64,000 nt of DNA from Octopus sinensis (GCF_006345805.1 NC_043007.1:70432001-70496000); one strand, 5' to 3'; numbered from the stretch's first letter, positions 1 through 61,452 are shown. Notes: generated from the sequence alone by a model not told the origin. Translations and numbers: made by a program.

Positions 1-2143
1 AGTAAATTATTCTTCCAACTCCATTCAAGTTTATCTCAAGAGAAACAGAAATAATTTGAGTTACCAACAACAAAGGCAGAACTGCACAACTAGTTTTTAT
101 TTTCTTCTCTTAAAATGCACCTATTGTTTATAGCCTTCAAAATTTGGTTAAAAAAAAAAAAAAAAAAAAAAAATCAAACTCAATTTGAAGCCCCAGAGTT
201 TTTAAGAAATTGTTGTTTCCAGAAAGTTTTCACAACAGTTTGAATTCCTAAACAATAATTTGGAGTAAAAATGAAATAAAACTAATTCAAAGATATGACA
301 TATTGATTTCTTGTCAATGAGGAATTAATGCAACTCAATAAACCCCAGTATATAACAGGTACCTGTTTTATTGCCCCATGCCTTCGACTCAAAGTGATGA
401 CAAGCAAAGTCAACCCGAGTGGAATTTAAACTATATTGGGCTAACACTAAATATGGCAAAGAATTAGTCCGGTGGACACCATTCCAGATGAGAGTACATC
501 TAAACTGTAAGAGAGAATTTCTCCTTTACTTCAAATCTCACTTCAAAATTACAAGATTCCTAAAAGGAAATAAATTCTACTTTAGAAGATCTCAAGCCTG
601 TATTTCCAAACAAACCATTCTATGAAGGAAGTGGGAAAGGGGCAGATGATTTACATAATTCTACTGATTGAGAGGCAAATAGTTTAGTTAAAACAAAACA
701 AAACAAACAGTATGTCTTCTGTTTTTAAATATTACACAAAATTCTTAACACAAAAGTATTAATGCAGAACAAGTTGTAATAATTGTGGTTAACGCAAACA
801 ATAGACAACATCAACTATAAAAAGTCTGAAAAGTTCCATTAAACTAAACATACTTGTGGATTGTTGCAGATTTTATTTTGGAGTTTTATGCAAGCAATTT
901 TATAGTACAAAGTAACAACACCAGTCTTGTCTTCACATGATTTATATTGAAATAATTATAAAGATTTTAAGTGAGGAAGGCACATATTTAGAAAATGAGT
1001 TGGATTGTTTTACCTACAATAAGTCTTGAATAAGTTTATCATATTTCATATGGCGAACGAATTAAATAAGGAATTGATTTGACATACAACAATACCAGGC
1101 CGGTGGGCCGTGAAGAGTATGGTATTGCTGTTGACAAGCTAGTAAGATGTAATAACAGCCATAGGTATATAGTATCATTAATACCTTCACCACCAACAAA
1201 CTTTCAACAAGGAAATTTAACAAGAGAGATATTCAACTGTTATTTCAATGTGTCAAATATATGTATAACATTTAAACATTTTATGTAAATAAACAAGTCC
1301 CTGAAATTAACATCTAACAGTAGATCTAACAGAATAACAAGCAACATTTTGCTTCATTCTCTACACAAACACAGAAGTCAACATTCTTGGCTTAAGCAGA
1401 AATTCAGTGTTTGTCTTTTTTTTGTTTTGTTCTGTTACAACAATAAAATATTAATTTAGATAAGTCAAGATAATTATTCCAAATATGTACATATCTTCAT
1501 CGTTAAAATTGTAATTAATTTAAATATTATTCCTTATAAAAGATAGACTTATTGCGTAGTTTGTCATTAAACCCAAACAAATATTTATTATTTATTAAAT
1601 CTGTAATTTTAACCTCTTTCACAAAGTTAATATATTCTCTTAAGTCTAAAGAAAAATTTCAAATTTATTGAGAAAATATCAAGAAGACTTTTAAATAAGT
1701 GAATTTTTTTTATTTTTTTCAGCATTGTATCTCTTAATCAAGAAACATGTTGATTTGCTTTCAAACAATTTACCAAATACAATTAATTGTTTAACTAATC
1801 TACAAATTCGTATATCTGTGCCAGTATTGCTATCATTGTGGTTGCTGTTATTATCCTGAAATAATTGCAATGAGTTTTCCACCAGGAGGTTTTTTGGTAT
1901 TGGTAACTCATTGTGTCGACATTGCCAGTAGTTCAAAGGCACCAGTAACATTTTTTCAAATGAATCAATGAATTGTTGAAATAGAAAGTTAAAATTCTTG
2001 TAGTAGGAGTCTAAATAGTTTTGGTATTTTGCAGTTATGGCAGCAAGTTTACATTAAAATTTAGATCAAAGAAAATATAAAAAAAATAATAAGTAGAAGA
2101 CAATTTGTGCTGAAGGTGGTTGGAAGAGTTCAGGCCATGAATA
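1..2143 (-). other. Probable 3' UTR and downstream region of the cofilin gene
   Basis: Directly follows the stop codon; TE-poor and U-rich on the minus strand; several AATAAA candidates, so the true end is not determinable. Confidence 0.55.
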
Positions 2144-3330: not shown

Positions 3331-3809
3331 AACTATATTAAGTTTTCTCTTTAAAAATTTAAACTTCCTAGTGTGCTGCATATTTCTATTAGAACTATTA
3401 ATTTAATATTGTTAAGATCTAAAGACAGTTTACTTGATGTTATCGCCTCCAGCACTGCAATCAATGTGAATTCAATAGTAAAATGCTATTTATGTCAGGG
3501 TGTAAATAGTAGAGCAGCAACTCCAGTTGAAAAAAAAATGAAATACTTTACACTTTTGACATTTTATAGAATGGGAAAACAAATTTGAAAAACTTTTGAT
3601 AATGGTAACTTTGTGTGTTTATGTCACTGCAGTTTTCCTTGACATATACACATTGTTACTTTAGAGATTTTATCAGGAAGATTTTCCATACATGGTTAAA
3701 ATTCAATAAAGACTAAAGAACAAAAAGCAGTGTAATTAGTCTATATTTTACATCAGATAGGAAATACTGTCTTTATATCAGCTACACATAAATGACAATG
3801 TAAATCCAA

Positions 3810-4092
3810 TGCCAGCGCCGCCTCGCCTGGCTTCCGTGCCGGTGGCACGTAAAATACACCAATCCGACCGTGGCCGTTGCCAGCCTCGCCTGGCACCTGT
3901 GCAGGTGGCACGTAAAAAGCACCCACTACACTCACGGAGTGGTTGGCGTTAGGAAGGGCATCCAGCTGTAGAAACATTGCCAGATAAGACTGGAGCCTGG
4001 TGCAGCCTTCTGGCTTCCCAGATCCCCGGTTGAACCGTCCAACCCATGCTAGCATGGAGAACGGACGTTAAACGATGATGATGGTGATGATA
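3810..4092 (+). mobile_element. RTE 3'-UTR-derived retroposon
   Basis: gtaaaaagcacccactacactc...catgctagcatgg...gttaaacgatgatgatg; inverted relative to 3187-3330. Confidence 0.85.
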
Positions 4093-8431: not shown

Positions 8432-8884
8432 CTTCAGAAAATAAAATAAAATGGAAAACAACTGGTGAAAAGACATTTCAGATAATCTGGACAGAAGAAA
8501 TATAAAAGCTGAACATTCTACTATATCTAAACTCTGAGTTTCCTAAAAGTTATAACGACACACTATCGTTAATAGATCATCGAGAAAAAAAAGAAAAAAA
8601 GGTAATCTTAATATTATGGAATAATCAACAAGTTCCAAGTTTGATACCAACATACCAACATGAACAATTACTCACTGATGTATTTTAGAGAAATTTTTAG
8701 AAATCTCATTCTTAGGATATAATTCCATTAAAATGAAAATTAAGACTTAGTATTTAAGAATTCCAGTTCCATTGTTGATGGGGAGACCATTTAAAGATCA
8801 ATAAAACAAGATAATCAAATTACAAAAACTGATCACATTGAGAAATCCATAGAAGGAAGGGTGAAGTGGAATCAGCAAAGACAT

Positions 8885-9165
8885 CGTCATCATTGTTTAA
8901 CATCTGCTTTCCATGCTGGCATGGGTTGGATGGTTTGTCCCAGGACTGGCAAGCCAGGCAGCTACACCAGGCTCCAATCTAATCAGACAAGGTTTCTACA
9001 GCTGGATGCCTTTCTTAACACCAAACACTCAGAGAATGTAGTGGGTGCTTTTTATGTGCTACCAGGACGGGGTCCAGTCAGGTGGCATTGGAAATGACCA
9101 CACTCAAATGGTGCTTTTCACATGCCACTGGTACAGGAGCCAGTCAGACAGCAATGGCATCAAAT
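8885..9165 (-). mobile_element. RTE 3'-UTR-derived retroposon, diverged
   Basis: (cat)n tail followed by ccatgctggcatgggttggatgg...gtagtgggtgctttttatgtg. Confidence 0.8.
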
Positions 9166-9393
9166 AAATAATTTAATGTTTATTTGATAAATAATATTTC
9201 TATGAGAACAAAAGTTGGATCTGTTCCACCAGCAATTGTGAAGAACATTTTGCACCAATATATGGAATTATTATACTCTAATAAACAAAAATACTAATAA
9301 AATACATTTACCAGTTATGAAAGCATCACCTTCTATAAAATTTATTTTATTTTTAATATCTTAAATCCAAGAATTAATGAAATTTATTCATCA

Positions 9394-9470
9394 ATGCTAC
9401 AATGTTTCATATTAAAGTTTACATCAGAAAACATCTGATTCGGAAGATTTAATCATCAACATTGTAGAAA
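9394..9470 (-). ncRNA. Structured intronic element copy 1 (box C/D snoRNA-like, K-turn-type hairpin)
   Basis: Minus strand: ctacaatgt-TGATGA-ttaaatcttccgaat-CAGA-tgtttt-cTGATGT-aaactttaat-ATGA-aacattgtag. 10-bp terminal stem; core shared with two other copies. Confidence 0.45.
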
Positions 9471-9599
9471 CATTTGTTCATTAAACCATAACAGCATAAA
9501 ATAGTTACAATAACTAAGGGGTACTTATTAGTGTGTAGAAATATTACTATGCTTATTTGTTTGGTTATTTCTTAAATGTGGCATTCCTCTCCCAAAGTA

Positions 9600-10980
9600 G
9601 CTGTTACAACTTGAGGGAGGGAGATTTGCCCGCTATTTCCATCAGGTAAGTAAGCCGCTGACAATATAAAAACATTTCTCACGGCATCAGCAGACAAAAT
9701 GCCCTAGAGGAAAGTGAGGAAGATGGGCTGGAACAGCCACTCTGACTTGTGGGGCTCATTTGCAGGTAGCAATTTCGAGCCCAATAGCGGTCCAGAAGCC
9801 AAGAATGCCGGAGGTCTCAACTGCCACAGGCATGGCCATAAACCTGTGGAAGAGTGACTGATACCTTGACAGTTTGCTTTTCTCAGCCAAATGAACAGTG
9901 GCACCTGCAATAGTAGCTGACAACACCAAGTTGCCACTGGCAGTAGTTTCGACATCCTCGATAAGGGGCCTACTGCCAGGGAATGGAAAAATGTCATACC
10001 ATCTGGCCTTTTATTGTCCTGCTGGTCTAGTCCCACTAGCTTGAGATGGAAAGGGAAGCCTGTGGCATCTAGGCCATGCTTTATAATCTTGTTAAAGGCA
10101 GCCAGAGCTCTTGTTAAGAGCGGAGTCTAGTGGCATGAGCAGCTCCCTCACACCTACTGTCTATGCCAGCATCCAGCTGTACTGGGCTGAGTTTCTCACC
10201 TGGTTTGAATGCAACACAGCTGCAGATGACTTTGGCTGTGAGTCTCCGAAAGACATTGCCCACAGCAATGGGGAGTATGCCCTTGCCCTTCTCGAGAGCA
10301 ATTAGTGAACTGAAAAGAAGAGGCCTCGGGGATTAGGGTCCAGGGTCCTGTAAATGCACTCAGCTTCAGCAGTGAGTGGTGACAGCAAGACTTTAAGGTG
10401 ACTGGATCAGAAACTGCCAACATCTCTGTCGCTACTGGCAGTTAAAGACCTCAGAGCAGAAAGAATGTCTTTCTCAAGGCCATACACAGCAACTGAAGGT
10501 CAGGTGATGGTATGAGTTTCAGATCTGCAGGTAGCTCAAGATGTTTGAGTCAGTGGGCAGTCAGGACCTCTTTGGTAAGATGGAGGACAGCGCTGTCAAA
10601 GGCAACTACTCTGACACTTACTAAGACATGGCCCTCGATGAGTTTGGCATAAACAGTCACATAGATACTTTGAGCTGGTGTCAGGGTTGGAGGTCTGCAG
10701 GATCGAGAATGGGCTGAGTACAACATGTTCAGATGCTAGATATAGGCATCAGCCCGAAGGACAAGATGTTAGTCCTGACTAGGGTTGTTGTTGACAGGCC
10801 ACCTTGATCAGTAGCAGTTTTGGGGAGATAAAGAGTCAGCAGAGCAAAATAAAATACTTGATCCCAATTGCATGGTTTGACCAGATTGTAGGGCTTTCTT
10901 GATTAAGGATGTGAGGGTACCAGCCACGAAAAACCTGGGCTGTTTTCTGGATCTTAAGAGCAATCTTCAGGAACCTACAT
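9600..10980 (-). mobile_element. Decayed non-LTR retrotransposon with a restriction-like endonuclease (CRE-like)
   Basis: Cys/His knuckle remnant followed by GLDQQDNKRPDGMTFF(PW), the RPDG..PW..G signature of RLE-type elements; many frameshifts. Confidence 0.65.
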
Positions 10981-12237
10981 TATCAGAAATCATTTACACT
11001 TAATTGTAAAGTAGTAACTTTTCTCAATGAACAAAGAGAGAAGTAAAAACTACATTAGTTAAAGACACAGCAGGTTCTTAAAAACAGTTGTTAATCTTAC
11101 ATATGTTGTTGCATATATTGCCTAAATTAATGCATTCACAACAACAACACACACAAACTTTCTGCACACATTCTGTTTAGAAAATACCACACATCCATAT
11201 TATACTGCACACCCCCCAAAAATTTACCTGAGTATATAAGATAAAGACTCAGGAAAACATCGAAAGAAGTATTGAAAAATAAGCTTCAGATGTTGAGCCC
11301 CACAGAGGTGATAACAAAGAACAAAGATGATTAACGATTTGCTCTGCTTGAGAAGACACTTTCCTTCTAAGTAAAATTGAAGCCTAAAAGGCATGTCGTT
11401 CATACCTATGTCTTGAAAACAATTTGTCCATGACAAATCTCTCCCTGGCACTACCTATCTTCCTAACACCCCTCCCATCCACTCATATTCACCACAGACT
11501 GCATTCCCCTCCCCTCTGTCTTCTCTCCTTTTGCACTCTTGTGAACTTACCTGCCCACTCAATCCCGTCTGTACCACATATATACCCTTCATTTAATTCC
11601 AAAGTATATCCTAACATTTTTATCACTTTCTCTCCTTTTCCACCTGGGTAGCCACGTATTGTTTCTACTGCAAGATGCCTGTTTCTGTCCTCCTGTTACG
11701 TTATCTTTTCATCACCTGGCACAAAACTCCCTATAAAACTACTCTCCACTCAGCTGAGGGGGTCTTGTCTTGCAAGTTACTTGGTGACCTTACTGTTGCC
11801 GGAGCCATGTAAAAAGCACCCAGTACACTCAGTAGAATGGTTGGTGTTACCAAAAGCATCCAGCCATAAAAACCATGTCAAATGTCAGATATGGTTATTC
11901 CCGTTGGTGAAGGAGAGGACTTAAAGAGAAAGAAAAACAAAAACACTACTTCTATTTGCAATGGATGCATGAATGTAATTTCAGCCCGCGTATGGATTTT
12001 GTTATGAAGTTACAGTGGAGGCATTGATGATTTTGAATTTGCCTGGGATCAGGCAAAGTGTGTCTTTGTAGTGGGATGTAGTTCTATTTACTGTTCTTTT
12101 CCTTCAACTCAAATTGTTTGAATACATCATGACGCATTTTATATAACCTTCCCAAGATGTACATATATATATGTACACAGACACATGTATACATATCAGA
12201 AGACATGTCTACATACACACACACATATATATATATA

Positions 12238-12618
12238 TCTCTCTATATAAACGGCAGTTTGTCTGTGCGTGTTTCTGTGTGTCTGTTTTCTTGTACCCTC
12301 ACCCTGACCACGGCTTTCAACCGATTCTGATGAAACTTGACACACACATACCCCAATGTCATAATTCAAAACTAACGCAGCGACAATTTTGAAAAGTTCC
12401 CCCAGTTCTGAAAAAAATCGATAAATTCGACATGGGGTCGAGAATCAGAAACACAAACCGCAAACTGTCTAGGGGACGCAACTCCACCATTTTTAACTAA
12501 AAAAAAAATTTACCATCATTTTTTCCCATCTTTTTGCTATTTTTTGGCTATAACTCTCTAAAAATGCTTTATAGTTATTTCCCTTACAAACCTGAGCAAC
12601 GCCGGGCGATACTGCTAG
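12238..12618 (+). mobile_element. Non-autonomous Helitron
   Basis: 5' TC (a|TCTCTCTATATAAA), subterminal hairpin (cctgagcaacgccggg), 3' CTAG|t; inserted between A and T. Confidence 0.85.
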
Positions 12619-12909
12619 TATATATATATATATATAAACATACAGACATATATATCTATAATGGTTGCCACATCTTGTCAGATAGCCAAATCAAGAGAGA
12701 CATCTGTACGTCATTGGATTTAAGTGACAACAGCTTGCACAACACTTTTGCCATTCTCTTGCTGGCAGTGACAAGCATTGCAAGATGACTGCTGTTATTT
12801 TGTCTGCAAGCTTTATGTTAGATAATCTGTCCCCTAAGAGAGGTGTTTCCCCAGGGCTTTACCAAAAAAAAAAAAAAGTCAAAACCTCTACTACTTCTGG
12901 GGATTATAT

Positions 12910-13342
12910 TTAACCCTTTAGTGTTCAGATTATTCTATCAAACATAATGCTTATTGATTCCCATTGATTTGAATTAATCATGCATTATCTCATATCTTCA
13001 AGATCTTGATGGTGTAATTACTTAATGTAGAATAACATTGTAGGGTAGGTGTGAGAGCCTGGATCTAGTCAGCTTGAACATAAAACAGATTAGCTATTTT
13101 GGCCGGATATGGCCAGTTAACCCTTTAGAATTCAGATTTCTTTGTGAAATGTAATATTTATTTATCCACAATGTTTTGGAATCATCAAGCATTATCTCAT
13201 CAGTTTGAAATTTCAATGGTGTGTTTGTATATTTTTAGATTGACATTGTAGGGTAGGTGTGAGGGGTTGGATCTGGTCAGTCTTAACATAAAACATAGAA
13301 TATTTGGGCCAGAAATGGCTGGATTAAATGCTAACGGGTTAA
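12910..13342. mobile_element. Two tandem piggyBac-type (TTAA) MITE units
   Basis: TTAA-CCCTTTAG starts at 12910 and 13117; ends ctaacgggTTAA. Related copies near 13475-13690, 25472-25880, 30340-30548 and 54022-54249. Confidence 0.7.
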
Positions 13343-14167
13343 CCTATAAATGAGACCGTGGCAAGCACTACTATTCTTGTTCAGAATGGACTTGGGAATA
13401 ACAGTTAATCAAGATGTGACTCCACACCCCGCTCAACTCCAGAACTGGAGCCTCACCACTGGATGTAGTTCAACCATTTAGCATTTAAACCGGCCATATC
13501 CAGCCCAAATATTCTTTTGGTTTTATGTCCAAATTGGCCAGGTCTGGCCTTTTATACCTACACTATAATGGCATTATAGTGCCAATCACATCGCTGAAGT
13601 TTCAAAGCTGCAAGATAATGCATGAATAATTCAAAATAATGTGAATATATAAGCATTACATTTGACAGAATCAGAATGCTTGAGTTAATGTCATACCCAG
13701 GACATTGTGTGCGTGTGCACACACGCACAAGTAGCACAAAGCCACCTCACTCAATACTATCATTCACCTTAGGTTAGGGATCTTGCCCTGCAAGTTACTT
13801 GGTAAGCTCCCTGATGCTGATGCCATGAAAAAAAGCACCCAGTATACCCTGTAAAAGAGGTTGACATTAAGAATGTTAACCAGTTGCAGAAACCATGCCA
13901 AAGCAGATATTCTGTCGGAAGATAAACATTAAATGGAACAAGATGATGATGATGAACTCACAAATATATATGTACAGACACGCACACATGTAGTACAATC
14001 TGTATGTTATATAGTGCACTAACTACTATGTAAGTCAATTTATGTCAATGTATAAAATTATTATGCTCTAATAATAATACTAACAAAATACACTTACCAG
14101 ATAAGAAAAGGTATTTTATTTCTAATTAAAATCCTAAATTCTAGAATCAATGAGATTTCTTCATCAA

Positions 14168-14243
14168 TGCAACAATGTTTCATATTAAAGTTTACATCAG
14201 AAAACATCTGATTCGGAAGATTTAATCATCAACATCGTAGCAA
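14168..14243 (-). ncRNA. Structured intronic element copy 2
   Basis: Core identical to copy 1. One terminal-stem change gives a G.U pair on the minus strand only. Confidence 0.45.
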
Positions 14244-15328
14244 CATTTGTTCGTTAAATTTACCATAACAGAATAAAATAGCTACTTTTTATTTAAAGTA
14301 AATTTTCCTCATTGAAGACAGAGAAAGAAAGAAATGAAAGGTACATTAGTTAAAAGATACAGGAGGTTCTTAAAAACAGCTGTTAATCTTTCATATATTG
14401 CATAGATTGCTTAAATTAATGCATTCACAACAACACAAATTAAGGTTTACCTGAACACACACACACACACACAAGTCCATCCATCTACTATTCATAGGAG
14501 TATCATGGGACTAGAAGCCTCAGGCACCCCTGCCATAGTGTCCTATCAGAAGCAACCGTGATTACTTTCCAGCTGAATTCCTGAACATGATCATCTGAGA
14601 CAATGAATATTATCCAATCGTCTCATTCTTGGTCTCAGCTGGCTTTGCTTGAAGAAATTTGTCTGGTGATTCTTTCATACATCTTAATCACGTGTCCATA
14701 ATACCAAAGCTGGGACCTCTCAATGCAGAGAAGTAACCAACTGACCTAGAGAGAACCCATGACCTCTGCGCTACACACCCTGTCAAGTAGTATTACTCAA
14801 ATGATCCTTTGAAGGAGCCCCGTTTCAGCCCCTTGCATTTGCTCCTGGGCTTTTCATCCTGCCTGTGCTTAGTAGTTTCAAAATGAAAGTTAGTCCAAGT
14901 AATCCAATCCCACTCTTCAGACTTCGACGTCTGACCACAGTGGTTCAGCAGGCCAAGATAGTGACCAGCATGCTGTAGGTTTTACACTGGAGTGGCCTTC
15001 TCCTACAGAAAACTTACATGGTGGGAGGGATCTACCAACACTGAAGTTGTTGGAAGGGTGCAAAAGTGGGCAATGGACTGCCTGAGGGACTCCAATCCTT
15101 TGTTTTATGTAAAGATTGTCACCCTTAACTTTTTCCTTTCCTACAGTACTCGTGAGATAGTGAGGATTTGTGCTTGGACTTTCTTCCATGTCATACTAAT
15201 TAACCCAAGTTAGGACCCTGACAGGTGCTACTACTCCAAGTCACAGTAGACCCAGGAACAATAATGAATAACAGATGGTTCTACATTCCCCAAGACTGAA
15301 CCTGGTAGTAGGTAGAGCCATATATATA

Positions 15329-15490
15329 GACGTAGGAGTGGCTGTGTGGTAAGTAGCTTGCTTACGAGCCACATGGTCCCGGGTTCAGTCCCACTGCATG
15401 GCACCTTGGGCAAGTGTCTTCTACTATAGCCTCAGGCCAACCAAAGCCTTGTGAAGGGATTTGGTAGATGGAAACTGAAAGAAGCCCGTC

Positions 15491-15525
<35 letters not shown>

Positions 15526-15737
15526 GTGTGTGTGTGTGTGTGTGTGTCTGTGTTTGTCCTCCCAACATCGCTTGACAACCGATGCTGGTGTGTTTACTAG
15601 CGGTTTGGCAAAAGAGACTGATAGAATAAGCACTAGGCTTGCAAAGAATAAGTCCTGGGGTCGATTTGCTCGAATAAATGTGGTGCTTCAGCATGGTCAC
15701 AGTCAAATGACTGAAACAAGTAAAAGAGAGTAAAGAG
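15329..15737 (+). mobile_element. tRNA-derived SINE with central (TA)(TG) microsatellite
   Basis: ggagtggctgtgtggtaagtagcttgctt...ccgggttcagtccc pol III-like head and ...gactgaaacaagtaaaagag tail; many copies in the window. Confidence 0.85.
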
Positions 15738-15753
15738 TATATACACATACATA

Positions 15754-17545
15754 CAGTGGTAACTTGACTTACGAGAGTCCCAACCAACGAGTTTTCCAAG
15801 ATAACAGCCGACTCTTGGCTGATTTTTTGCTTCGAGTTGCAAGCTAAAATTCAGGTTACGAGTCAGCTTCAGATACTCCACCACTAGTTGGCATAGCAAA
15901 CGCCACAGTGAATGCTGTAATATCTGTCCAGCATCTCGCGTCTCAGTTGATAGCTAGACAGACATGCATGTTAGCAAGTGCCAAGATCATTAGTAGATGA
16001 TAGCTAGACAGACATGCACACTAGTTAGACAGGTGGTAAAATGCTTACTTGGTCGTTGTAGGCTACAGAAGCATCAGTGTTGTGCTTGCAGTTTATTTTA
16101 CAAAACTTTGTTTTTCCAACCATGGGTCCAAAGAAAGTGAGTGCAAAAGACAGTGGTGAGAAGAAGAAGTGGATGATGTGCATTGAATGGAATTATCAAA
16201 AAGCATGACCAATGAGTGCGGGTAGTCAACATGGCAAAGCAGTACAAGCGTAGCACTTCGATCTGCACCATACTAAAGCAGAAGTAGTCAATAAAGGCTA
16301 TAATGTCAGCCAAGGGTGTTAAAACAATTTCTAAAGAGCAAACATCTATCCATGAAAATATGGAGAAGCTGCGAGAAGCAGCTTGCAGGGGATACCATGA
16401 CAGAGGCTATAATCTGTGAGAATGCACAAGCTATTTATGCTGATTTGCTGCAGCAGACTCCAGACACTTGTCTGGACGAGGCATCAGGCAAGCTGTTTAA
16501 AAGCCAGTTGGTGCTGGTTCGAGAATTTTAAAAACAGGACCGGCATTCACCCCATTGTCAGCCATGGTGAGGTAGTGAGGGTAGATATGAAGGCAGCTGA
16601 AGATTACCTCTAAACCTTTGCCAGAATTATAGCAGCCGAAGGATACATCCCCCAGCAAATCTTCAAATGTGATGAGACAGGTCTTTTTTGGAAGAAGATG
16701 TCAAAGAGGACATATACAACAGCAGAGGAGAAGAGAATGCCAGACCACAAACCCATGAAAGATAGGCAAACACTCCCACTGTGCACCAATGCAATATTAA
16801 GCTGCTGCTAGTTTAGCATTTGGAAAACACCAGAGCCTTTAAGTCACAGAAGATTCTCAAAGGAAAACTGCCGGTTATGTGGAAGGCAAGACCAAGGGTG
16901 TGGAGTGGGTGAATTTGGTCTTTGGTCCTGACTTTAGGAAATATCTCCAGGAAAATAACCTATCAATGCAAGCCTTCTCATCCTGGACAATGGACCTACT
17001 CACCCATCTAGCCTCAAAGAGTTCGAGTTTATAAAGGTTCTCTACCTTCCACCCAACACCACCCCTATTGCAGTCCATGGATCAGCAGGAGATTTCAAAT
17101 TTCAAGAAGCTCTTCACTAAGCACCTCTTCTGTTGCCACTTTGAGGTGACAGAGAGCAAAGACCTCACCCTTCGAAAGTTCTGGAAGAACCACTATGACA
17201 TCAAGATATGTCTCAGAATTATTGACATGGCCTGACAGGGTGTTACAAAGACGACCTTCACCTCTGCGTGGAAGAAGCTGTGGACTGAAGTTGAGTCTGA
17301 AACAGAGTTTGAAAGACTCGAACCTGAAGCGGCAGTGGTGGAGGAGATTGTATCTCTTGGCAAGTCCATGGGCCTGGATGTGGATGAAGGTGACATCAAT
17401 AAGCTCATCGAGGACCACTCCAAGGAACTGACAACAGAAGAGCTAAAGGAGTTACAGATGCAGCAGCACATGGAGGTTTTGCAGGAAACAGGTGATGTGG
17501 AGGAGACGGAGGGGGAGGTTAATTCTACAAGAGCAATAAAGGAAA
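15754..17545 (+). mobile_element. Tigger/pogo DNA transposon, transposase pseudogene
   Basis: TA|CAGTGGTAACTTGACTTACGA end; FKASWCWFENFKNRTGI (CENP-B-type HTH) and IFKCDETGLFWKKM...KDR (DDE_1), with stops. Confidence 0.85.
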
Positions 17546-17789
17546 TGTTGAAATTCATCCTGCTTCTCATCATTCTATACCCACTTAAAACTTGTCTAGT
17601 TCCTTCCTACTGTTTGTTCTTCCCGTAATGCTATTGCTGAATTGTTTCAACTCAGAAGGAGAGGAGGGAGGGAGGGAGGGAGAAAGGAAGGAAGGAGAGG
17701 AACTATTGCAGAGGGCGAGAGAGAATATATGTAAGCAAGAGAAACAGAGAACGAGAAGTGGGAGAGATTCAGTTGAAAACTGCAGTTGT

Positions 17790-17998
17790 TAGAGAAAAAC
17801 CTGTGTAAAACACCTTTTTTTCCTCATTTCTCACTTTATCCGGGAGCTCTGGGCAAAAAAGTTATAGTGCGTGATTATTCTTAGCACATAAGTAATGTGT
17901 GTGTGTGTGTGTGTGTGTGTAAAGTTTGGAGAAAATTGGTTGAAAACTCTGGAAATGTATACATATAACGTACACAGACATCCGTTGTTTTATATAGA
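17790..17998 (-). mobile_element. Helitron-like non-autonomous element, 5' part
   Basis: Minus strand begins a|TCTATATAAAACAACGGATGTCTGTG, like the other Helitron 5' ends; 3' end not recognised. Confidence 0.55.
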
Positions 17999-18003
17999 TA
18001 TTT

Positions 18004-18396
18004 ATTCTTTTACTTGTTTCAGTCATTTGACTGCGGCCATGCTGGAGAACTGCCTTTTAGTTGAGCAAAGCAACCCCAGGACTTATTCTTTGTAAGCCTA
18101 GTACTTATTCTATTGGTCTCTTTTGCCAAAGCACTAAGTTATGGGGATGTAAACACACCAGCACTGGGAATCAAGCAATGTGGGGGTGGGGCAAATACAG
18201 ACACACAAACACACTCATATATATATGTATATACGAAGGGCTTCTTTCAGTTTCCACCGACCAAATCCACTCACAAGGCTTTGGTCGGCCCGAGGGTACA
18301 GTAGAAGACACTTGCCCAAGGTGCCACACAGTAGGACTAAACCCGGAACCATGTGGTTGGTAAGCAAGCTACTTACCACACAGCCACTGCTGCACC
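18004..18396 (-). mobile_element. tRNA-derived SINE, same family as 15329-15737
   Basis: Full-length reverse-complement match to that copy. Confidence 0.85.
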
Positions 18397-18479
18397 TATA
18401 TACATAAATATATATCATATACATACACACACACCACACAAACACATATATAATATACACACAGATCATTAGCTTTGTC

Positions 18480-18990
18480 CTTCATGTCTCTGAAGATGAC
18501 CAGATTATCAGCTTTACACTGTGTTAGTCTTGTGGTAGCTTATTAGGCAAATTTAGGCATGGAATCTGCAATTACAATAGGAACACATAATAGCAGAGAC
18601 AGGACCCAGTGAGATTTGCTTTCCCTGCCGCCCTCCTCTCTTTAGTTTCTCTGGTCGCATCAGATTTAAAGTGCTGTACACCAGAGTACACAGCACTACA
18701 CCACAGGGAGCAATCCCAAACAAGATGCTCCCAAGTAGGCAGCTCTATGTTACACTTTTTCAAGGTGGTCTTGAGAGGGTCTTTACATTTCCTGTTTGGT
18801 CCACCACTTGACCACGAGACAATTGCTAGACGACCACAGGAGATCTGTTTAGTGAGCCTGGAGCTGGGCATATGTACTACATGCTCCCTTCACCATAGTA
18901 GGAATTTGCTCAGGAAAGCATACATGCTTAGCATAATAGCTCTCTCAAGCACAGTTCTATTAAGAATTTTATCCCGATGTCAATAATTTT
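18480..18990 (-). mobile_element. RTE-1-like LINE C-terminal fragment
   Basis: MPSSRLTKQISCGRL...GGPNRKCKDPLKTTLKKCNIELPTWEHL resembles RTE ORF2 C-termini. Confidence 0.75.
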
Positions 18991-19129
18991 TTGCAGATAT
19001 TACTATATACACCGTGTGTGTGTGTGTATATACATTATATATATATATATATATATAGATATATACATATTTACTTCACAATACGGTTTATATAATACAC
19101 TGTGTTAATGCACAAAATTATATTCTGAT

Positions 19130-20015
19130 AATAATAATCATCATCATCATCATTACTGATCGACCGTGGTCGAGACAATGGAATTTACCATGCTACGCCA
19201 GACTTGCACGGTCCATCATAGCATTACGGAGGTCCTGTTGCTGGATGCCGGTATCCCTGGAGATTACATCAGGGTAGGAGAGTGTGTGCCCTCTGGTATC
19301 GTGAGTAGATGGCTTCCAGAGGAGGAGAGTAGAAATTGCCTCGTTTTCAGCTCTACAACAATGTCCAGCTAACTGGACTCTCCTACCTTTCACAAAAGAT
19401 GACACAGGTGGTAGTTTCCCATATATTTGCATTTTGGTTGGATGGTGCTTCCACGAGAGATTTTGAGCTCTCATAAGGAGACGAGTGTAGGTTCCATCCA
19501 ACCGCCTCTCAAGCTTCTTTGATAACGTCCAGGTTTCTGAGCCATATAGTAGAATTAGTTCGACTGTGGCTTTAAAGATTTTAAGCTTAAGTCTCTACTT
19601 AGATTTGATGACCAGATCTTAAGCATATCATTACAGGCTGACCAGGCCATACCCTTTATAGTTAGAAAATCTTTTCCAGATGATGATATGTATGACCCAA
19701 GATATTTGTAATCAGAAACCATATTTAAGGGCGTATTGTTGAGAGTATGGATGATGCAATCACTGTTGGAGAGGCACTTGTTTACATATTCAGTCTTGCC
19801 CTCATTGAGGTAAAGACCTACACAATTTGAGGCTTGTTCGAGAGATTGTAAAAGAGACTGGGCATTAGAGAGAGAATCACTGATAAGAGCGATGTCGTCA
19901 GCGTCTGTTAAGTATTCAGCTGGGTGTCTGGAACTTCTAGGTTTTATTTCAAAGCTCTTGCCAGAAATGGTATCAACTGACATACGTAGCACATAGTCAA
20001 CGACAATGATGAAGA
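19130..20015 (-). mobile_element. RTE-X-like LINE, 5'-truncated, with (TGA)n tail
   Basis: DADDIALI, VSDYKYLGSYI and YTRLLMRAQNLSWKHHPT...GHCCR motifs; tail at 19130-19155. Confidence 0.8.
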
Positions 20016-20130
20016 TAATAATAATTCTAATGAAATACATATACCAGTTATGAAAGCATCATCTTTTATAAAATATATTTTATTCCTATTTAAAATCTTA
20101 AAACTTAGAATTAATGAAATTTATTCATCA

Positions 20131-20205
20131 ATGCTACAATGTTTCATATTAAAGTTTACATCAGAAAACATCTGATTCGGAAGATCTAATCATCAACATG
20201 GTAGC
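20131..20205 (-). ncRNA. Structured intronic element copy 3
   Basis: Core identical apart from one change that makes a G.U pair in the inner stem on the minus strand. Confidence 0.45.
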
Positions 20206-21576
20206 AATGTTTGTTCATTAAATTTACCCTAACGTCATAAAACATTTTTTTTTTTTTCAATAAACATCTGTGAAAATAATAAAACACACCATTCTACCAA
20301 ATCAACATAATCAAGACCACAAGAAAATATCGATGGGGGTACTTTCTAAAATAGTAAATTTTGTCAAAAGAAAACAAAAAAAAAAAAAACAGTATCAGCA
20401 AATACAAGACTGTTATCTTAACATTTTACATTAATATTTTAAAATTGAGGTGTTTAGTAACAGATTGTCATAAGCTTCACAACATAAAACCGAGAAAAAC
20501 ACAAAGTTGTGCGACTTTCAGAATGCGATATCTTGGCAAGGAATGAAGTTAGAAAGCTGATTTTGGTCATAAAATGACCATGAAGACCTCCTCTAATCAT
20601 CCCACCGCCATAAAATTATTTATTTTATGTATGCATCAGAAGGATGAAACAATGACTGCGCCTTTCTTATTTTGTAGAATATACTGGTGCTATGAAACGG
20701 TGTATCGCATTGCATATTTTAGCCATAATACCTACAAAAAAAAAACATACAGAGACCCCCACCAAAGGTATAGTTTGTGTTTCTATATACCAAGGTAAGT
20801 ATCTTTAAGAAGTAAGACAAGATAGTAAAATAATAACCCATTATCGTTATGAAGGTAACAAGAAATATTAGAAAATGAGCCATAACACTTCAAAAATGAT
20901 ACAGGGACCGCAGAAAAACTTATTGAGTGTGTGTGCTTACGATGGTGTATTACTAAACTCTCTGGTCCAAGCCACACTGGTTCTTCCAACTTTTTGGGAT
21001 TCTAGATATCGAGATAAAGAAAATAATATACCAACCTCAAAAATGGCCAGGGTGGCACTTATGACACTTATTAAACCCCTCAACATATTCAATTGTGATG
21101 TCAAGGAAAATTCACGTGGAGAGACCACTTCGTCTTCAAGCAGACACCCTGTTGAGCAATGTTACTCCAGAGATCCTTCAGAGGAGCCCTATTTCAACTG
21201 CTTGTATTCACAATTGTACACTTTCGGTCATTACTCAACATTCATGACACATTCACATACATGTATGCATGTACAATTCAATTAGCACAAAGCTACCTCT
21301 CTCAATGGAATCCCCTTACATAGATGAAGGGTCTTGTGTTGCAAGTTACTTGATAAGTTACTCACTAGGTGGTGCTGTGAAAAAAAAAAACCCACCAATT
21401 ACAGTCTGTAAAGTGCACTAGAAAGGCATCCAGGGTGTAGAAACCACGGCAAAGCTGACACTGGTGTTCTATATAATCTTCTGGCTTATTGGTTCCTGTT
21501 AAACCTTCCAACCCATGCCAGTATGGAAAAAGGACATTAAATGATGAAGAAGGACAAGCAGATATATAATACATCT

Positions 21577-22260
21577 ATTATATAAAATCTGTTGTCTGTC
21601 TGTGTGTGTGTGTGTCTTCTAGGATCTCAGCCATCCTCCATCCAATTGCGCTCAAATTTGATATGTAGATACTTATTTCTTTATTACCCACAAAAGGCTA
21701 AACATAGAGGGAACAAACAAGGACAGACATAGGTATTATGTTGATCACATCGACCCCAGTGCGTAACTGGTACTTAATTTATCGACCCCGAAAGGATGAA
21801 AGGCAAAGTCGACCAGGGTGTGTATAAGTCTTTAAAAAATTAGAAAAATCAATTCCAGGTGAGAATGCGATCAATAAAGCCGTGGGAAAGTGCAAGTACA
21901 TCAGCTGTTGTGATCGATACTACGCGTAAGCGAAAAAATGCACGTGCAGTTTGCGCAGGCATTCTCAAGGCAAAAGTTATCATGGGTCAAGGAGCAGGGG
22001 ATGTTGTTTTTATTTCCCGCATGCCATTAATTCTGTCGGACTGTGTTTACCCGATGAAACGTGTTCAATCCCCTATTCGCCTGAGCTTTGCGATGACCAT
22101 CAACAAAGCACAGAGGCAGTTGTTGAAAGTCGTGGGGTTGGAAGTCAGCACTCCCTGCTTTTTGCATGGACAACTGTATGTGGGCTGTTCAACAAACCTT
22201 TTCTACTACGCTCCAGACGCAGTAACAATGAATGTGGTTTACAAGGCTGCGCTCCACTAG
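21577..22260 (+). mobile_element. Internally deleted Helitron with PIF1-like helicase C-terminus; SINE fragment inserted at ~21690-21815
   Basis: 5' a|TCTATTATATAAAA; RMPLILSD...KRVQSPIRLSFAMTINKAQ...HGQLYVGCS; CTAG at 22257-22260. Confidence 0.85.
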
Positions 22261-22845
22261 CTTTTCCATGCCCATGAACATCCCATAAAGTTAGCTAGCT
22301 CAAAATTAGTCACTTAGTCCCCTAGGTTGTTGTTTTTCATCAAAAATCATCCCAAGTTGATTTCCTACATGTTTTATCAGATAAACTTATTTTTGTCCCC
22401 GGTACGTTTTCATAAATTCATCATGCTTTTCTATCTAGATTTACCTCCAACTAACCCATTTGCATGCATCGTTTTTGTCCTGCTTTTCTTCTGTCAACCT
22501 GTACATAACTGCACCTTCCATTTTTTGTTGTTTTTGTACTGCTTAAAAGCACGTTTCTTTCCTGCCAAGCTTTCTGTTTAAACCGTGTTTGTGTTCTCCC
22601 AGTCAACAGCCTTATCATTACTGGTACCTTAAACTCTTCAGTTGCATATTTGTGTGAATAAAATCGTTTTTCTTTGGAATAGAAAAAAAGTCTATCTTTA
22701 TTTCTTCTTTCGCTGGTGTCTCAAATTTAGGTTAAATCAGTGTTTCTCAAAGGGGATGCCCATGGGACGGTCAGACAAGTTGTTTTGAGAAAACTTGGTT
22801 TAAATGTTTGACAACTCAGCACCGTCCACTGGAGGGGGGGGCTCG

Positions 22846-22881
<36 letters not shown>

Positions 22882-23127
22882 AACATATACATACACATAT
22901 ATAAACATACACATATATATACATGCACACACATATATTCATATACACATAGGCTATAGTAGAAGACACTTGCCCAAGGTGCCCCGCAGTGAGACTGAAC
23001 CCGGAACCATGTGGTTGGGAAGCAAGCTACTTATCACACACCCACATATACACATTTATATATATATATATATATACACGTATACATATATATATATATA
23101 CACACACACACACATACATATATATAC

Positions 23128-23935
23128 ACATTTGACTGCGGCCATGCTGGAGCACCGCCTTTAGTCAAGCAAATCGACCCCATTATTCTTTGTAAGCCTA
23201 GTACTTATTCTATCGGTCTCTTTTGCCGAACTGCTAAGTTACAGGGACGTAAATACATCAACATCGGTTGTCAAGCGATGTTGGGGGGACAAACACACAC
23301 ACATCATCATCGTTTAACGTCCGCTTTGCATGCTAGCATGGGTTGGACGATTTGACTGAGGACTGGTGAACCAGATGGCTGCACAGGTTCCAATCTGATC
23401 TGGCAGAGTTTCTATAGCTGGATGCCCTTCCTAACGCCAACCACTCCGAGAGTGTAGTGGGTGCTATTAAAGTGCCACTGGCACGAGGGCCAGCCTGGCA
23501 ATGGCCACGCTCGAAAATGGTGTTTTTTACGTGCCACCTGCACAGGAGTCAGTCCAGTAGCACTGGCAACAACCTCGCTCGAATGTTTTGTTCAGGTGCC
23601 ACAGACACAAGCGCCAGTGAGGCGACACTGACAACAATCACGCTCAAATGGTGTGCTTTATGTGCCAGACAGCTGCTCTGGCAGTAATCCTGCTTGGATG
23701 GAGCAGTTAGTGCTCCACTGGCATGGGTGCCAGTCGACACACACACATATATATATACATACATACATACACACACATGATGGGCTTCTTTCGGTTTCCA
23801 TCTACCAAATCCACCCACAAGGCTTTGGTCGGCCCGAGGCTATACTAGAAGACAGTTGCCCAAGGTGCCACGCAGTGGGACTGAACCTCGAACTATGTGG
23901 TTGGTAAGTAAGCTACTTACCACACAGCCACTCCT
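23128..23935 (-). mobile_element. tRNA-derived SINE split by an RTE-tail retroposon (23303-23650) in its central microsatellite
   Basis: SINE 3' half at 23128-23300 and 5' half at 23770-23935; a further SINE 5' fragment at 22950-23040. Confidence 0.8.
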
Positions 23936-24127
23936 GTATATACATATACATATGTATGTATATAAACTATTTGGCTGCTTGTTTCCCTGGAGATTGTCAG
24001 AATGATGTAGACGCTTCTGATGAGATCCCAATAAGGTTCAAAAATTGATAAAAGGTTGTTCATCATTGAATGCTCCAACAATTCTGTCAATACACACTTT
24101 AGACAGGGACTTTTGTCAACCTCAAAG

Positions 24128-24535
24128 GGATCATCATCATCATTTAGCTTCCGTTTTCCATGCTAGCATGGGTTGGATGGTTTAACTGGGGTCTGTGATT
24201 TGGCAGTCAGATTTGGCAGTGTTTCTACGGCTGGATGCCCTTCCTAATGCCAACCACTCCGTGAGTGTAGTGGGTGCTTTTTACGTGCCACCTGCACAGG
24301 TGCCAGACAGAGCTGGCAAACGGCCACGAACGGATGGTGTTTTACGTGCCACCGGCACGGGGGCCAGGCGAGGCTGGCAACGGACACGAACGGATGGTGC
24401 TTTTACGTGCTACTGGCACGGGGCCAGGCGAGGCTGGCAACGGACACGAGCGGATGGTGCTTTTACGTGCAACGGCACGGGGGCCAGGCAAGGCTGGCAA
24501 TGGACACGAACGGATGGTAGTTTTACGTGCCAACA
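24128..24535 (-). mobile_element. RTE 3'-UTR retroposon containing a 60-bp minisatellite (~4 units)
   Basis: cggatggtg recurs at 24331, 24391, 24451 and 24511. Confidence 0.85.
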
Positions 24536-24681
24536 AAAGTGTGTATGTATGTTCAATCAGAAAAGTAATTGTTTTCTATATATTCTTAACACTAAGTCTT
24601 GTTTGTTCCTCATTCCCAAATATAAATAATATATTATCCTTTGTTTTCAATCTCTTTTCTTTCACCCTAACCTATACTTAC

Positions 24682-24817
24682 CCTTTTCAGCTCGCTCCTC
24701 CACAACAATACTTTTTAAATCTTCGGATAGTCTGAATATGACATATCTATGTTTATGCTTCAATTTGATTTCTTGAAAAGCGTCTAAAACTTCATCTGCA
24801 ACAGTAACTCCGGAGGA
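24682..24817 (-). CDS. CFL: ADF/cofilin, first full coding exon (SSGVTVADEVLDAFQEIKLKHKHRYVIFRLSEDLKSIVVEERAEK+G; phase 0 to 1)
   Basis: Manual minus-strand translation; acceptor tttttaaatttcag| and donor |gtaagt; 136 nt. Typical ADF/cofilin N-terminus (M)SSGV with Ser3. Needs an upstream exon ending in ATG. Confidence 0.95.
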
Positions 24818-41884: not shown

Positions 41885-42525
41885 GGGTCGAACTAGAGGC
41901 ACAAGGCCTGAACTTCTGTGGGTGAGTTAATTACATTGACTCCAGTGTTCATCTGGTATTTATATCATTGACCCCTAAAGGATGAAAGGCAAAATCAACC
42001 TCGGTGAAATTTGAACTCAGAACATAAAGACTGGTGAGATGCCACTAAGCATTTTGTCTGGCATGCTAACGATTCTACCAGCTTGCCACCTTGACAGTAA
42101 TAATAATAATAATCCTTTCTACTAAAGACACAAGACCTGTGAACTAGTTGATTACATCAACCCTAGTGTTTCACTGGTACTTAATTTATTGACTCCAAAA
42201 AGATGACAGGCAAAGTCAACCTTGTCATAATTTGAACTCAGAACATGAAGACAGATGAAACGCTACTAAGCATTTTGCCTGGTGTGCTAATGATTCTGCC
42301 AGCTCGCCAACTTGACAATAATAATAATGGTTTCAAATTTTGCCACAAGGGCAGCAATTTCGAAGGAGGAAATAAGTCAGTTACATCGACATCAGTGTTC
42401 AAGTGGTACTTATTTTATCAACCCCAAAGGAATTTGAACTCAGAACATAGCAATGAGTGAAATACCGCTCAGCATTTAGTCCAGCACTAATGATTCTGCC
42501 AGCTCACTGCCTTAATAATAATAAT
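41885..42525 (-). mobile_element. Three head-to-tail copies of the second SINE family
   Basis: atttgaactcagaacat recurs at ~42010, 42230 and 42432, separated by (taa)n tails. Confidence 0.8.
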
Positions 42526-42699
42526 AATAATAATAAAGTATGGTATGGTCATTCTTCTCAAAGTGGCTCTTCTGATGAGTAGTGTCAATGTCCTCTCTCC
42601 TACCTCATGTGTGAAACCTATTGGTAAAATGAATCTATAAATACTAAAATACAGTAGAAAGATTAATATACTCACTCTATAGACAAATATACAAATGCC

Positions 42700-42812
42700 T
42701 GTCTGATTCAGACTATATATGTATATATAGATTCAGACTATATATGTATAGATAGATTTAGACTATATATATATATATAGATTTAGACTATATATATATG
42801 TATATATATATG

Positions 42813-42845
<33 letters not shown>

Positions 42846-43307
42846 TTAAATTTACAGAAAACAAAAGACGAAGACAGGTGAGGGAACAACAAGCAGGTGT
42901 ATTAGTTTGACATTCAGGAAGAATGGAAAAGGCTTTGAGGTTTCAAGCATATGCTTTTCAACAGAAAGGATTGAGAGGGGGGGGGATATCAAGATTAATC
43001 AGCCAAAACTGCGAGGATGATCCAGTTCTTGACTGAAGATTGAAGGCTTCGAATGTTCCGTCCATGTTTTTTGTATCGTCTTCTAAATGTTTTGCGTTCT
43101 TGTCCCAGTTTGTATTTTTTTATACATATATATATACATACATATATATATGCACACATACATATATATGTGCACACATACACATATATACACATACATA
43201 TATACACATACATACATACACACACACACATACATACATATACACACATACATATACACATACATACATACATATACATACACACATACATACATATACA
43301 TACATAC

Positions 43308-43340
<33 letters not shown>

Positions 43341-43356
43341 CGTACACACACATACA
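42700..43356. repeat. Compound microsatellite block (TA/TG/TACA)n around a PLE-like fragment
   Basis: Visible directly; source of the spurious His/Thr/Tyr/Ile and Val/Cys/Met ORFs. Confidence 0.9.
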
Positions 43357-58999: not shown

Positions 59000-59512
59000 G
59001 TAATTTTATCTTGTCCTTATTCATAGTGCAAGTTTTGAAGAGTGCATTTCGATTTTAACAGCTATTTTTTTCAAAGCTATATTGGAAGTAACAAGGAGCA
59101 TATTTGGCATATTTTGCTTTATGAGTTCAATAAAGACAACAATGCAACGGAAAGTACAAGAAATATTAATGCAGTATATGGGGATTGGACAATAAGCGTA
59201 AGGCAGTGTCAATGGTGGTTCCAGAAATTCCGAGCCATAAACTACAGCCTAGAAGACGAGCCTCATCCTGAAAGATCTGTAGAACTCGACAAGGACATCC
59301 TGAAAACCCTGGTGGAACAAAATCTCATCGTAACTGTTGAGGAACTAGCAGAGAAGCTTGGATTAGGTCATTCAACCATTCATTGAGACCTGTGTGCTAT
59401 CGGAAAAGTCAGCAAATTGGGTCAATGGGTTCCTCACGAACTTTCCGAGTCTAATTGCATGCAGAGAGTGAATGTATGCTTTTCTTTGCTGTCACATCTC
59501 ACCACTACTGCG
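59000..59512 (+). pseudogene. Mariner transposase N-terminal fragment
   Basis: HILLYEFNK..NATE..RNINAVYG...QWWFQKFR...LEDEP...TVEELAEKL and KLGQWVPHEL; truncated by Helitrons. Confidence 0.85.
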
Positions 59513-60903: not shown

Positions 60904-61452
60904 TTGGGTTGTCCGGAAAGTTTGTGCCGATTTTTAAAGGAAAGAAAAAGGTCAATAAATACTTGCCATTATATTTTTAATCAACCAAATATGAACCATT
61001 TTGTTGCACAATGCGTCTCCATCTTTCCTTTAACTTGAAAATACCCTCTTCCCAGAATTGAGGTGGTTTCATGGCAAAGAATTCATCAAGGTATCTTTTT
61101 ACATCATCCAAGGAATTGAAATTTTCAATATTAAGACTATTCTGCAGAGACCTGAATGAGTGGAAATCCAGAGGAGCAATATCTGGTGAATATGGAGGGT
61201 GGGGTAACACATCCCAGCCGAGCTGCAGCAATTTTTATCTGGTTCCCAAAGCATCAAGTGCCGAAAATTAACTTTCTTATCTTCCATTTTAAAGGGTTAC
61301 AGAATTAACACAGGTTATACCACAAAAACATAGCTTAAACTGTGCTCTAAATGGGGGTGCAGTCAAATCCTATTTTATGGGCTCAACTACGTTCTAAAAT
61401 AAGTTGAAAGGTAAGCTACTATAAATCGGCATGAACTTTCTGGACAACCCAA
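60904..61452 (-). mobile_element. Internally deleted mariner with intact TIRs
   Basis: ~30-bp TIRs with 3 mismatches and TA duplication; MEDKKVNFRHLML fused to HPPYSPDIAPLDFH...WEEGIFKL. Confidence 0.92.

Follow-up and report, generated by a model that had tools for sequence, protein, structure and literature searches.

Why does one intron of an octopus cofilin gene hold three copies of the same small hairpin, and might those copies encode RNAs of their own? The question is raised by a 64,000-nt stretch of the Octopus sinensis genome (GCF_006345805.1 NC_043007.1:70432001-70496000), here called the window and numbered from its first letter. In it, an original prediction made from the sequence alone had placed a 50-nt core at ~9399, ~14172, and ~20136 and had described a kink-turn (K-turn)/box C/D-like hairpin on the sense strand of the cofilin gene. 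The observation is confirmed, and it is strengthened by synteny and constraint across genera. For its meaning, a reading as small nucleolar RNA (snoRNA)-like genes is the best available, as an interpretation rather than a demonstrated membership. Based on the sequence, we put at roughly 0.5 the probability that each copy encodes an orphan box C/D-like intronic small RNA, of a family amplified by tandem duplication.

Three hairpin copies in one cofilin intron

The 50-nt core occurs exactly three times in the whole window, on the plus strand at 9399-9448, 14172-14221, and 20136-20185, and the exact 50-mer was matched in none of 100 dinucleotide-preserving shuffles. The positions originally given are thereby borne out. 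Alignment and self-BLAST set each core in a repeated unit of ~240 to 250 bp (9256-9508, 14046-14296, and 20017-20260), which is larger than had been described, and pairwise identity between the three Octopus units is 80 to 88%. The reported contrast between an identical core and diverging flanks held up: the invariant fraction of columns outside the run is 0.53, and no run exceeded 33 in 20,000 column permutations (approximate P, 3e-12). The invariant run of 50 nt is far longer than the flanks predict.

The gene itself is an ADF/cofilin gene on the minus strand, located by tblastn, and its product has the same sequence as the Octopus “actophorin-like” protein P0001. By the splice sites, exon 2 spans 24817-24682 and exon 3 spans 8431-8302, and exon 4 starts at 2306. 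Given the bounds of exons 2 and 3, all three copies therefore lie in intron 2, in sense orientation.

On the minus strand, RNAfold recovered the fold of the original prediction in 3/3 Octopus copies, with energies of -19.7 to -22 kcal/mol and z-scores against shuffles of -3.3 to -4.5. The outer stem of 10 bp (CUACAAUGUU/AACAUUGUAG) leads to a 4x4 loop (GAUG/AUGA) and a 6-bp stem (AUUAAA/UUUAAU); above these, an 8x6 loop is followed by a second 6-bp stem (AUCAGA/UCUGAU) capped by a UGUUU loop. Along the sense strand, the motifs run as originally described, UGAUGA (C), CAGA (D'-like), UGAUGU (C'-like), and AUGA (D-like). Copy 2 has an A>G change in the 5' arm that gives a G.U pair, an A>U change in the 3' arm that gives a U.U mismatch, and a stem lengthened by G-C and C-G pairs. 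In copy 3, the outer stem has a C.U mismatch, and the AUUAAA stem has a G.U pair owing to an A>G change. Every sense frame of the hairpin sequence contains stops; the sequence is noncoding, and a coding exon was rejected on this ground. Look-ups in public assemblies for two small open reading frames (ORFs) that overlap the copies found none on record. If the RNA were trimmed like known C/D snoRNAs, which retain 4 to 5 nt before the C box and 2 to 5 nt after the D box (PMC4914119), the mature product expected from copy 1 would span ~9402-9464.

Conservation between Octopus and Argonauta

We compared the orthologous cofilin loci of O. sinensis (L001), O. vulgaris (L002), and Argonauta hians (L003), which together contain eight hairpin copies. 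As its reverse complement, the window matches O. sinensis record CM016869.1 (GCA_006345805.1) exactly. A profile of the repeated unit found exactly three copies in each Octopus locus, all of them in intron 2 and none elsewhere in 86 to 87 kb. Because the O. vulgaris intron is only ~2 to 3% diverged from that of O. sinensis, it adds little information. Intron 2 of Argonauta hians is 1.37 kb (42340-43706) and carries two hairpins (42746-42816 and 43227-43297), 481 bp apart. In a sensitive BLAST comparison, the hairpin gave the sole significant alignment between the Argonauta and Octopus introns (E, 1e-19 to 1e-21). Its identity is 88.7% over 71 nt, against 81.8%, 85.5%, and 81.1% for the three exon-containing alignments. 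All remaining matches between loci were exons, 3' untranslated region (UTR), or dispersed repeats; the last hit many places, unlike the hairpin. The excess conservation over flanks that the original prediction proposed to look for in the orthologous intron is thus present, the hairpin being the only part of it that can be aligned between the two genera. Because the argonaut keeps two hairpins in the same intron, and these are more conserved than the coding exons, we consider the copies probable unannotated small-RNA genes.

The conservation within the hairpin is not uniform. In our alignment of the copies (A4), columns 17-37 and 54-72 do not differ between Octopus and Argonauta, with the sole exception of an A>G change at column 25 of Octopus copy 3, and the second block is unchanged in 8/8 copies. 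Differences between the genera are confined to the terminal stem and to the central 16 nt, which read AGAUGUUUUCUGAUGU in Octopus versus UAAUAUUCU(C/G)UGACGA in Argonauta. Six of the 16 positions in columns 38-53 differ in both Argonauta copies and a seventh in one, and Argonauta does not preserve the inner 6-bp stem. The terminal stem is 10 to 13 bp long, 87% of its cells pair, and three of its pairs are altered on both sides between genera: A-U to G-C (columns 9/75), G-C to A-U (6/78), and U-A to G.U (5/79). Across the structure, 89% of cells pair, versus 33 to 49% when the partners are slid by 1 to 3 columns; the covariation score was reached by 2/500 shuffles, and RNAalifold predicted the same stems. 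As an alignment pattern, this would be what a C box with a guide, followed by a second guide with a D box, predicts.

Paralogs of both lineages share a preserved core between decaying flanks. Paralogs within a species are more alike than orthologs, which on the sequence comparison indicates either independent duplications or concerted evolution. With profiles and the covariance model, we searched ~164 kb of nonredundant octopod DNA, a set of loci rather than whole genomes, and found no hairpin beyond the three intronic copies in the window, three in O. vulgaris, and two in Argonauta. The copies are, on this scale, not dispersed, as the original prediction required of them. Neither nhmmer nor the covariance model built from the eight copies found a copy in the cofilin loci of a chiton, Solemya, or Mytilus, and a 22-mer from the invariant part had no match in JGI metagenomes. 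A weak covariance-model match in intron 3 of Argonauta (L003 44762-44855) was rejected as an unrelated, near-perfect long palindrome resembling a miniature inverted-repeat transposable element (MITE).

Sequence next to the hairpin shows further, less regular similarity. The ~30 nt upstream of it in the sense direction (window 9468-9500) are ~75% conserved between Octopus and Argonauta (L003 42715-42745 and 43195-43226) and include GUAAAU, similar to a 5' splice site, although copy 1 lacks GUAA after a 4-nt deletion. A second UGAUGA follows the hairpin by 4 nt in all Octopus copies (9388-9393, 14161-14166, and 20125-20130, minus strand) and is absent from Argonauta. Within each genus, the paralogs also agree well over the ~35 nt that follow the hairpin, but the two genera do not. 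The cofilin 3' UTR (window 2012-2143 and 1270-1719, minus strand), 70 to 81% identical between Octopus and Argonauta, is the only conserved noncoding sequence at the locus besides the hairpins.

Box C/D-like features and competing explanations

The C box UGAUGA is exact and unchanged in 8/8 copies, directly follows the 5' arm of the terminal stem, and has U at the R position of RUGAUGA. At the other end, AUGA stands immediately 5' of the 3' arm in 8/8 copies, and the stem joins the C and D-like boxes as in box C/D RNAs. The center of copy 1 holds CAGA (9434-9437), the UGUUU loop, and UGAUGU (9421-9426); Argonauta has CUAA and UGACGA. The D' of each genus is one change from CUGA, at different positions (CAGA in Octopus, CUAA in Argonauta). 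In the predicted fold, G.A, A.G, and U.U pairs are possible between the C and D-like boxes. We also searched for a simple pattern, a terminal stem of 10 bp or more that encloses, in order, UGAUGA, 30 to 80 nt, and NUGA. Its expected frequency is 0.05 per 64 kb, and the window has it at these copies and nowhere else. A permissive Rfam scan of a 141-nt region that includes copy 1 returned 25 weak matches, 20 of them to box C/D families, on the sense strand and over full-length models, with a similar picture in Argonauta; a neighboring 141-nt control gave 4 weak matches and no C/D family.

These features make the hairpins like intronic box C/D snoRNAs (SNU13/15.5K, NOP56, NOP58, fibrillarin) in several ways: a length of ~65 to 71 nt, a sense position within a housekeeping-gene intron, an exact UGAUGA toward the 5' end and xUGA toward the 3' end, and a covarying terminal stem. 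The possible tandem G.A/A.G with U.U, the degenerate D'/C'-like boxes, and the two conserved stretches at antisense positions are further likenesses. Cofilin is a gene expected to be highly expressed, and the size and intronic sense location of the hairpins fit snoRNA biology. If the copies encode box C/D-like RNAs, a small RNA of ~63 to 71 nt would be transcribed within cofilin intron 2 and released after splicing. Its G.A motif would recruit SNU13 and then NOP56, NOP58, and fibrillarin, and the bound proteins would shield it from exonucleases. The invariant blocks would act as antisense elements on some target, making this an orphan snoRNA-like RNA.

Membership among box C/D snoRNAs is not established, and a series of results weighs against it. 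CUGA adjoins the terminal stem in 0/8 copies. The earlier caveat that box D is noncanonical was justified: the AUGA found in all eight copies keeps the GA of the sheared pairs, but the G-C pair of stem II becomes G.A. An ATGA variant of the D box is permitted in a published C/D-like scan (PMC4914119), and the D' consensus of yeast U18 is AUGA (PMC5389607). The D' and C' boxes are degenerate and unlike between genera. The GUU before the G.A pairs is complementary to the AAC after AUGA, which yields a symmetric 4x4 loop in every predicted fold. An asymmetric loop with a 3-nt bulge and tandem sheared G.A pairs, as in a K-turn, is not seen in these folds, which are predictions and allow for protein-induced kinking. 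From the description as a K-turn/box C/D-like hairpin, the C/D box layout and the possible tandem G.A survive, but the predicted loop is symmetric and has no 3-nt bulge. Unlike box C/D snoRNAs, moreover, the hairpins stand two to three to one annotated intron, and at least 409 nt in Argonauta and 965 nt in Octopus separate them from the 3' splice site; for mammalian intronic C/D snoRNAs, ~70 to 80 nt is described as optimal. Simple exonucleolytic release does not require the ~75% conservation of the ~30 nt upstream.

Database and target searches add to these points. The Rfam check suggested at the outset turned out negative: with the gathering score as cut-off, neither the window nor any of four other loci had a match, save one Argonauta transfer RNA (tRNA), and the best weak match, SNORD37, reached 20.8 bits against a gathering score of 45. 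Because unrelated C/D matches of ~22 bits occur elsewhere in the intron when all of it is scanned, the weak scores show only a generic C/D layout. The target scan covered human ribosomal RNAs (rRNAs) and small nuclear RNAs (snRNAs) and found in them no antisense match above 9 to 10 bp. The best rRNA complementarity, 9 bp at human 18S 650-658, predicts A654, which is not known to be a methylation site, and three of the pairs in a 10-bp complementarity to U4 are G.U. Within the host locus, exon 2 has a 10-nt stretch perfectly complementary to invariant block 1 (GAAGAUUUAA, window 24715-24724, minus strand); it is at chance level and is not in Argonauta exon 2. The original notion of an unannotated snoRNA-like paralog cluster is partly supported: it keeps its layout, its constraint, and its nondispersed copies, and has against it the AUGA box, the symmetric loop, and the lack of a threshold match or a target in these searches.

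The number of copies per intron has parallels. Several snoRNA isoforms per intron are reported from Drosophila and rice (Huang et al. 2004/2005, cited in PMC5932544), and the octopod hairpins are like these clusters, as cited there, in being tandem paralogs inside a single intron of a protein-coding host. The cited clusters are snoRNAs with demonstrated expression and mostly rRNA targets, whereas the octopod hairpins are candidates found in sequence; the Drosophila paper, by its title in the references of PMC5932544, concerns box H/ACA snoRNAs. Multiple hairpins per intron would accordingly be unusual, but precedented. A related case is that of the snoRNA-ended long noncoding RNAs (sno-lncRNAs) of the Prader-Willi region and RPL13A, whose prerequisite is two snoRNA genes in one intron (PMC4234469); if the hairpins are snoRNA-like, both Octopus and Argonauta would have this arrangement. 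Because at least two hairpins share one intron in both genera, pairs of them might serve as caps formed by small nucleolar ribonucleoproteins (snoRNPs), with the spliced intron trimmed to the caps and left as a stable sno-lncRNA, ~550 nt in Argonauta. We regard this as very doubtful. Only the spacer of Argonauta (410 nt) is of typical size; those of Octopus are 4.7 to 5.9 kb of transposon debris. If it were true, this would be the first sno-lncRNA-type transcript outside mammals, from a cytoskeletal gene of a cephalopod, and the retention of multiple copies in both lineages would be selected, not incidental.

Alternatively, the hairpins may be cis-acting structured elements of the cofilin pre-mRNA, bound by a protein, perhaps via the tandem G.A, that affects splicing, processing, or expression without a stable small RNA. 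The strict tie to one intron of one gene in three species is consistent with this, and so are conservation that reaches ~30 nt upstream and takes in a GUAAAU resembling a 5' splice site, a symmetric loop that is not a canonical K-turn, and the absence of a trans target among the sequences scanned (human rRNAs and snRNAs, and the host locus). Repeated binding sites per intron would also explain why at least two copies are retained. We nevertheless judge it unlikely: the chiton, Solemya, and Mytilus cofilin loci have no copy, so cofilin splicing is not generally dependent on one, and the short Argonauta intron (1.37 kb) would need no special help, yet keeps two. The precise C...D layout and the covarying terminal stem would be unexpected for a generic protein-binding site, and there is no conserved complementarity to host exons or splice sites, the lone 10-nt match in exon 2 being Octopus-only. 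Improbable to a greater degree is a cluster of microRNA (miRNA) precursors, or of snoRNA-like miRNA precursors, in which the 5p and 3p arms would correspond to the invariant blocks and the terminal loop to the center. Two invariant blocks of ~20 nt with ~16 variable nt between them, on a basal stem of 10 to 13 bp, have the right proportions; conserved arms and a variable loop are indeed what the alignment contains (columns 17-37 and 54-72 versus 38-53), and miRNA clusters typically show such a hairpin length and such tandem paralogs within introns. Lineage-specific miRNAs are numerous in coleoids (PMC9699675), and human miRNA precursors resembling box C/D snoRNAs have been described (PMC3089480), which share with our hairpins the C/D-like boxes, two conserved arms, and a variable center. 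The arms of the octopod hairpins are, however, poorly paired (~10/22 positions of the would-be duplex), with the 4x4 loop at the expected Drosha cut and the 8x6 loop in mid-duplex. The folding energy is just ~-20 kcal/mol, and the single Rfam miRNA match, mir-1305, is weak (16.4 bits versus 63).

Transposition, duplication without function, and the opposite strand must also be considered. A dispersed MITE or short interspersed nuclear element (SINE) is unlikely because no other copy was found in the ~164 kb searched; the ends of the three units share no inverted repeat, and no tRNA-like sequence turned up. The inverted repeat of the units is internal, and their boundaries differ between copies, as in segmental duplication. 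A functionless repeat of low copy number, or a remnant of an old mobile element, copied along with its surroundings and homogenized in its core by gene conversion, would account for an identical tract among Octopus paralogs of ~120 nt, which exceeds the hairpin, for paralogs that are closer than orthologs, as concerted evolution predicts, and for the transposon-rich setting. We consider it highly improbable, because gene conversion cannot account for blocks that are 100% identical in Octopus and Argonauta, given that no other part of the intron aligns and that exon-containing alignments are at 81 to 85.5%. Consistent terminal inverted repeats, a tRNA-like head, and dispersed copies are likewise lacking in the sequence searched. 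We give equally little credence to the antisense (window plus) strand as the functional one, with an independently transcribed hairpin RNA. The original argument from wobble pairs holds for the two substitutions it named (columns 11/73 and 25/59), which give G.U only on the minus strand, but other substitutions give G.U solely on the plus strand, and the full count is not diagnostic: of 150 cells, 134 are paired in sense orientation (3 of them G.U) and 136 in antisense orientation (5 of them G.U). Wobble pairs thus do not favor the sense strand, a further point against the box C/D-like reading, and the plus strand of copy 1 also folds (-18.4 kcal/mol; z, -2.7). We assign the hairpin to the sense strand because of its box motifs and intronic location. 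The antisense strand has no C/D or other recognizable motifs, its RNA would require its own promoter within the intron, and the weak Rfam matches are nearly all on the sense strand.

Two further candidates were rejected. Selenocysteine insertion sequence (SECIS) elements and other tandem G.A motifs bound by the L7Ae family share with the hairpins a UGAU/UGA non-Watson-Crick quartet between two helices, but unlike SECIS elements, the hairpins are intronic rather than in a 3' UTR, their host is not a selenoprotein gene, the spacing to an apical AA does not fit, and no Rfam SECIS match was obtained. A “private sub-intron,” suggested by a 21-nt micro-exon with good splice-like flanks 64 nt downstream of copy 1, found no support, as copy 2 has no acceptor and Argonauta no equivalent.

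Should the copies encode a stable box C/D-like RNA, they would form a new, lineage-restricted family of orphan snoRNA-like RNAs, so far found only in octopods, with tandem copies in a single intron of a cytoskeletal gene and constraint above that of the host coding sequence. In the literature searched, we found no description of cephalopod snoRNAs, and RNA biology in cephalopods, with its editing and its enlarged miRNA complement, attracts broad interest. Two invariant antisense blocks in an orphan guide would imply a conserved target, and the AUGA box and symmetric G.A loop would test how much deviation snoRNP assembly tolerates. As cis elements, the hairpins would instead mark a conserved regulatory feature of octopod cofilin expression.

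History of the array and neighboring sequence

The family arose by tandem duplication, and the Octopus copies are now spread over 11 kb by transposon insertions (Table 1). The right flank of unit 2 (14294-14435) matches 11007-11146 at 81% identity, and we therefore conclude that unit 1 was split by a ~1.5-kb insertion (9509-11006). The 481-bp spacing in Argonauta is probably closer to the ancestral tandem duplication.

Table 1. Positions in the window of the hairpins, their parts, the host intron, and the duplicated units
Feature	Position	Strand	Basis or remark
Hairpin copy 1, 71 nt, nearest exon 3	9397..9467	-	Exact core; fold -19.7 kcal/mol, z -3.3; covariance model 108.6 bits
Hairpin copy 2, 71 nt	14170..14240	-	Exact core, fold, alignment, covariance model
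Hairpin copy 3, 71 nt	20134..20204	-	Exact core, fold, alignment, covariance model
C box UGAUGA, copy 1 (same offset in copies 2 and 3)	9453..9458	-	Alignment A4 columns 16-21
Invariant block 1, copy 1, GAUGAUUAAAUCUUCCGAAUC	9437..9457	-	Alignment A4 columns 17-37; C box and candidate antisense element upstream of D'
Central variable segment, copy 1	9421..9437	-	Alignment A4 columns 37-53
Invariant block 2, copy 1, AAACUUUAAUAUGAAACAU	9402..9420	-	Alignment A4 columns 54-72; candidate antisense element, D-like box, start of 3' stem arm
D-like box AUGA, copy 1	9407..9410	-	Alignment A4 columns 64-67
Host intron 2, 16,250 nt, actophorin-like ADF/cofilin gene	8432..24681	-	tblastn with P0001 and splice sites
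Duplication unit 1, ~250 bp	9256..9508	-	Self-BLAST; continues at 11007-11146
Duplication unit 2, ~390 bp, least interrupted	14046..14435	-	Self-BLAST
Duplication unit 3	20017..20260	-	Self-BLAST; reverse-transcriptase fragment adjoins, 19555-20040

The fragment beside unit 3 is a 161-amino-acid ORF on the minus strand with a weak RVT_1 match (24 bits, below the cut-off), a piece of a long interspersed nuclear element next to the array. Intron 2 is full of SINE-like repeats. One dispersed family of ~270 bp, 69 to 81% identical, occurs at 8882-9163 and in at least 12 other places, among them 3809-4081, 23304-23572, 49040-49293, and 62370-62622, with related copies across the Argonauta locus. 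A tandem repeat at 24319-24530, in intron 2 and ~150 nt from exon 2, has ~3.5 copies of a G+C-rich 60-nt unit that are 83 to 85% identical; it is apparently part of the repeat near 8968-9082 and 23384-23498. Microsatellite-like TA/CA tracts at 22840-23131, 12160-12234, and 19012-19073 gave subthreshold matches to mir-297, mir-466, and mir-1277, the best scoring 53.9 bits versus 90, which are low-complexity artefacts. The single Argonauta tRNA gene (L003 6223-6295; Rfam, 40 bits) lies upstream of the cofilin gene model in the annotated locus. Elsewhere in the window, an ORF at 60977-61231 (minus strand) resembles a transposase C terminus, with no Pfam match, and another at 59042-59386 (plus strand) has the HTH_48 domain of Mos1-type mariner transposases (E, 4e-20).

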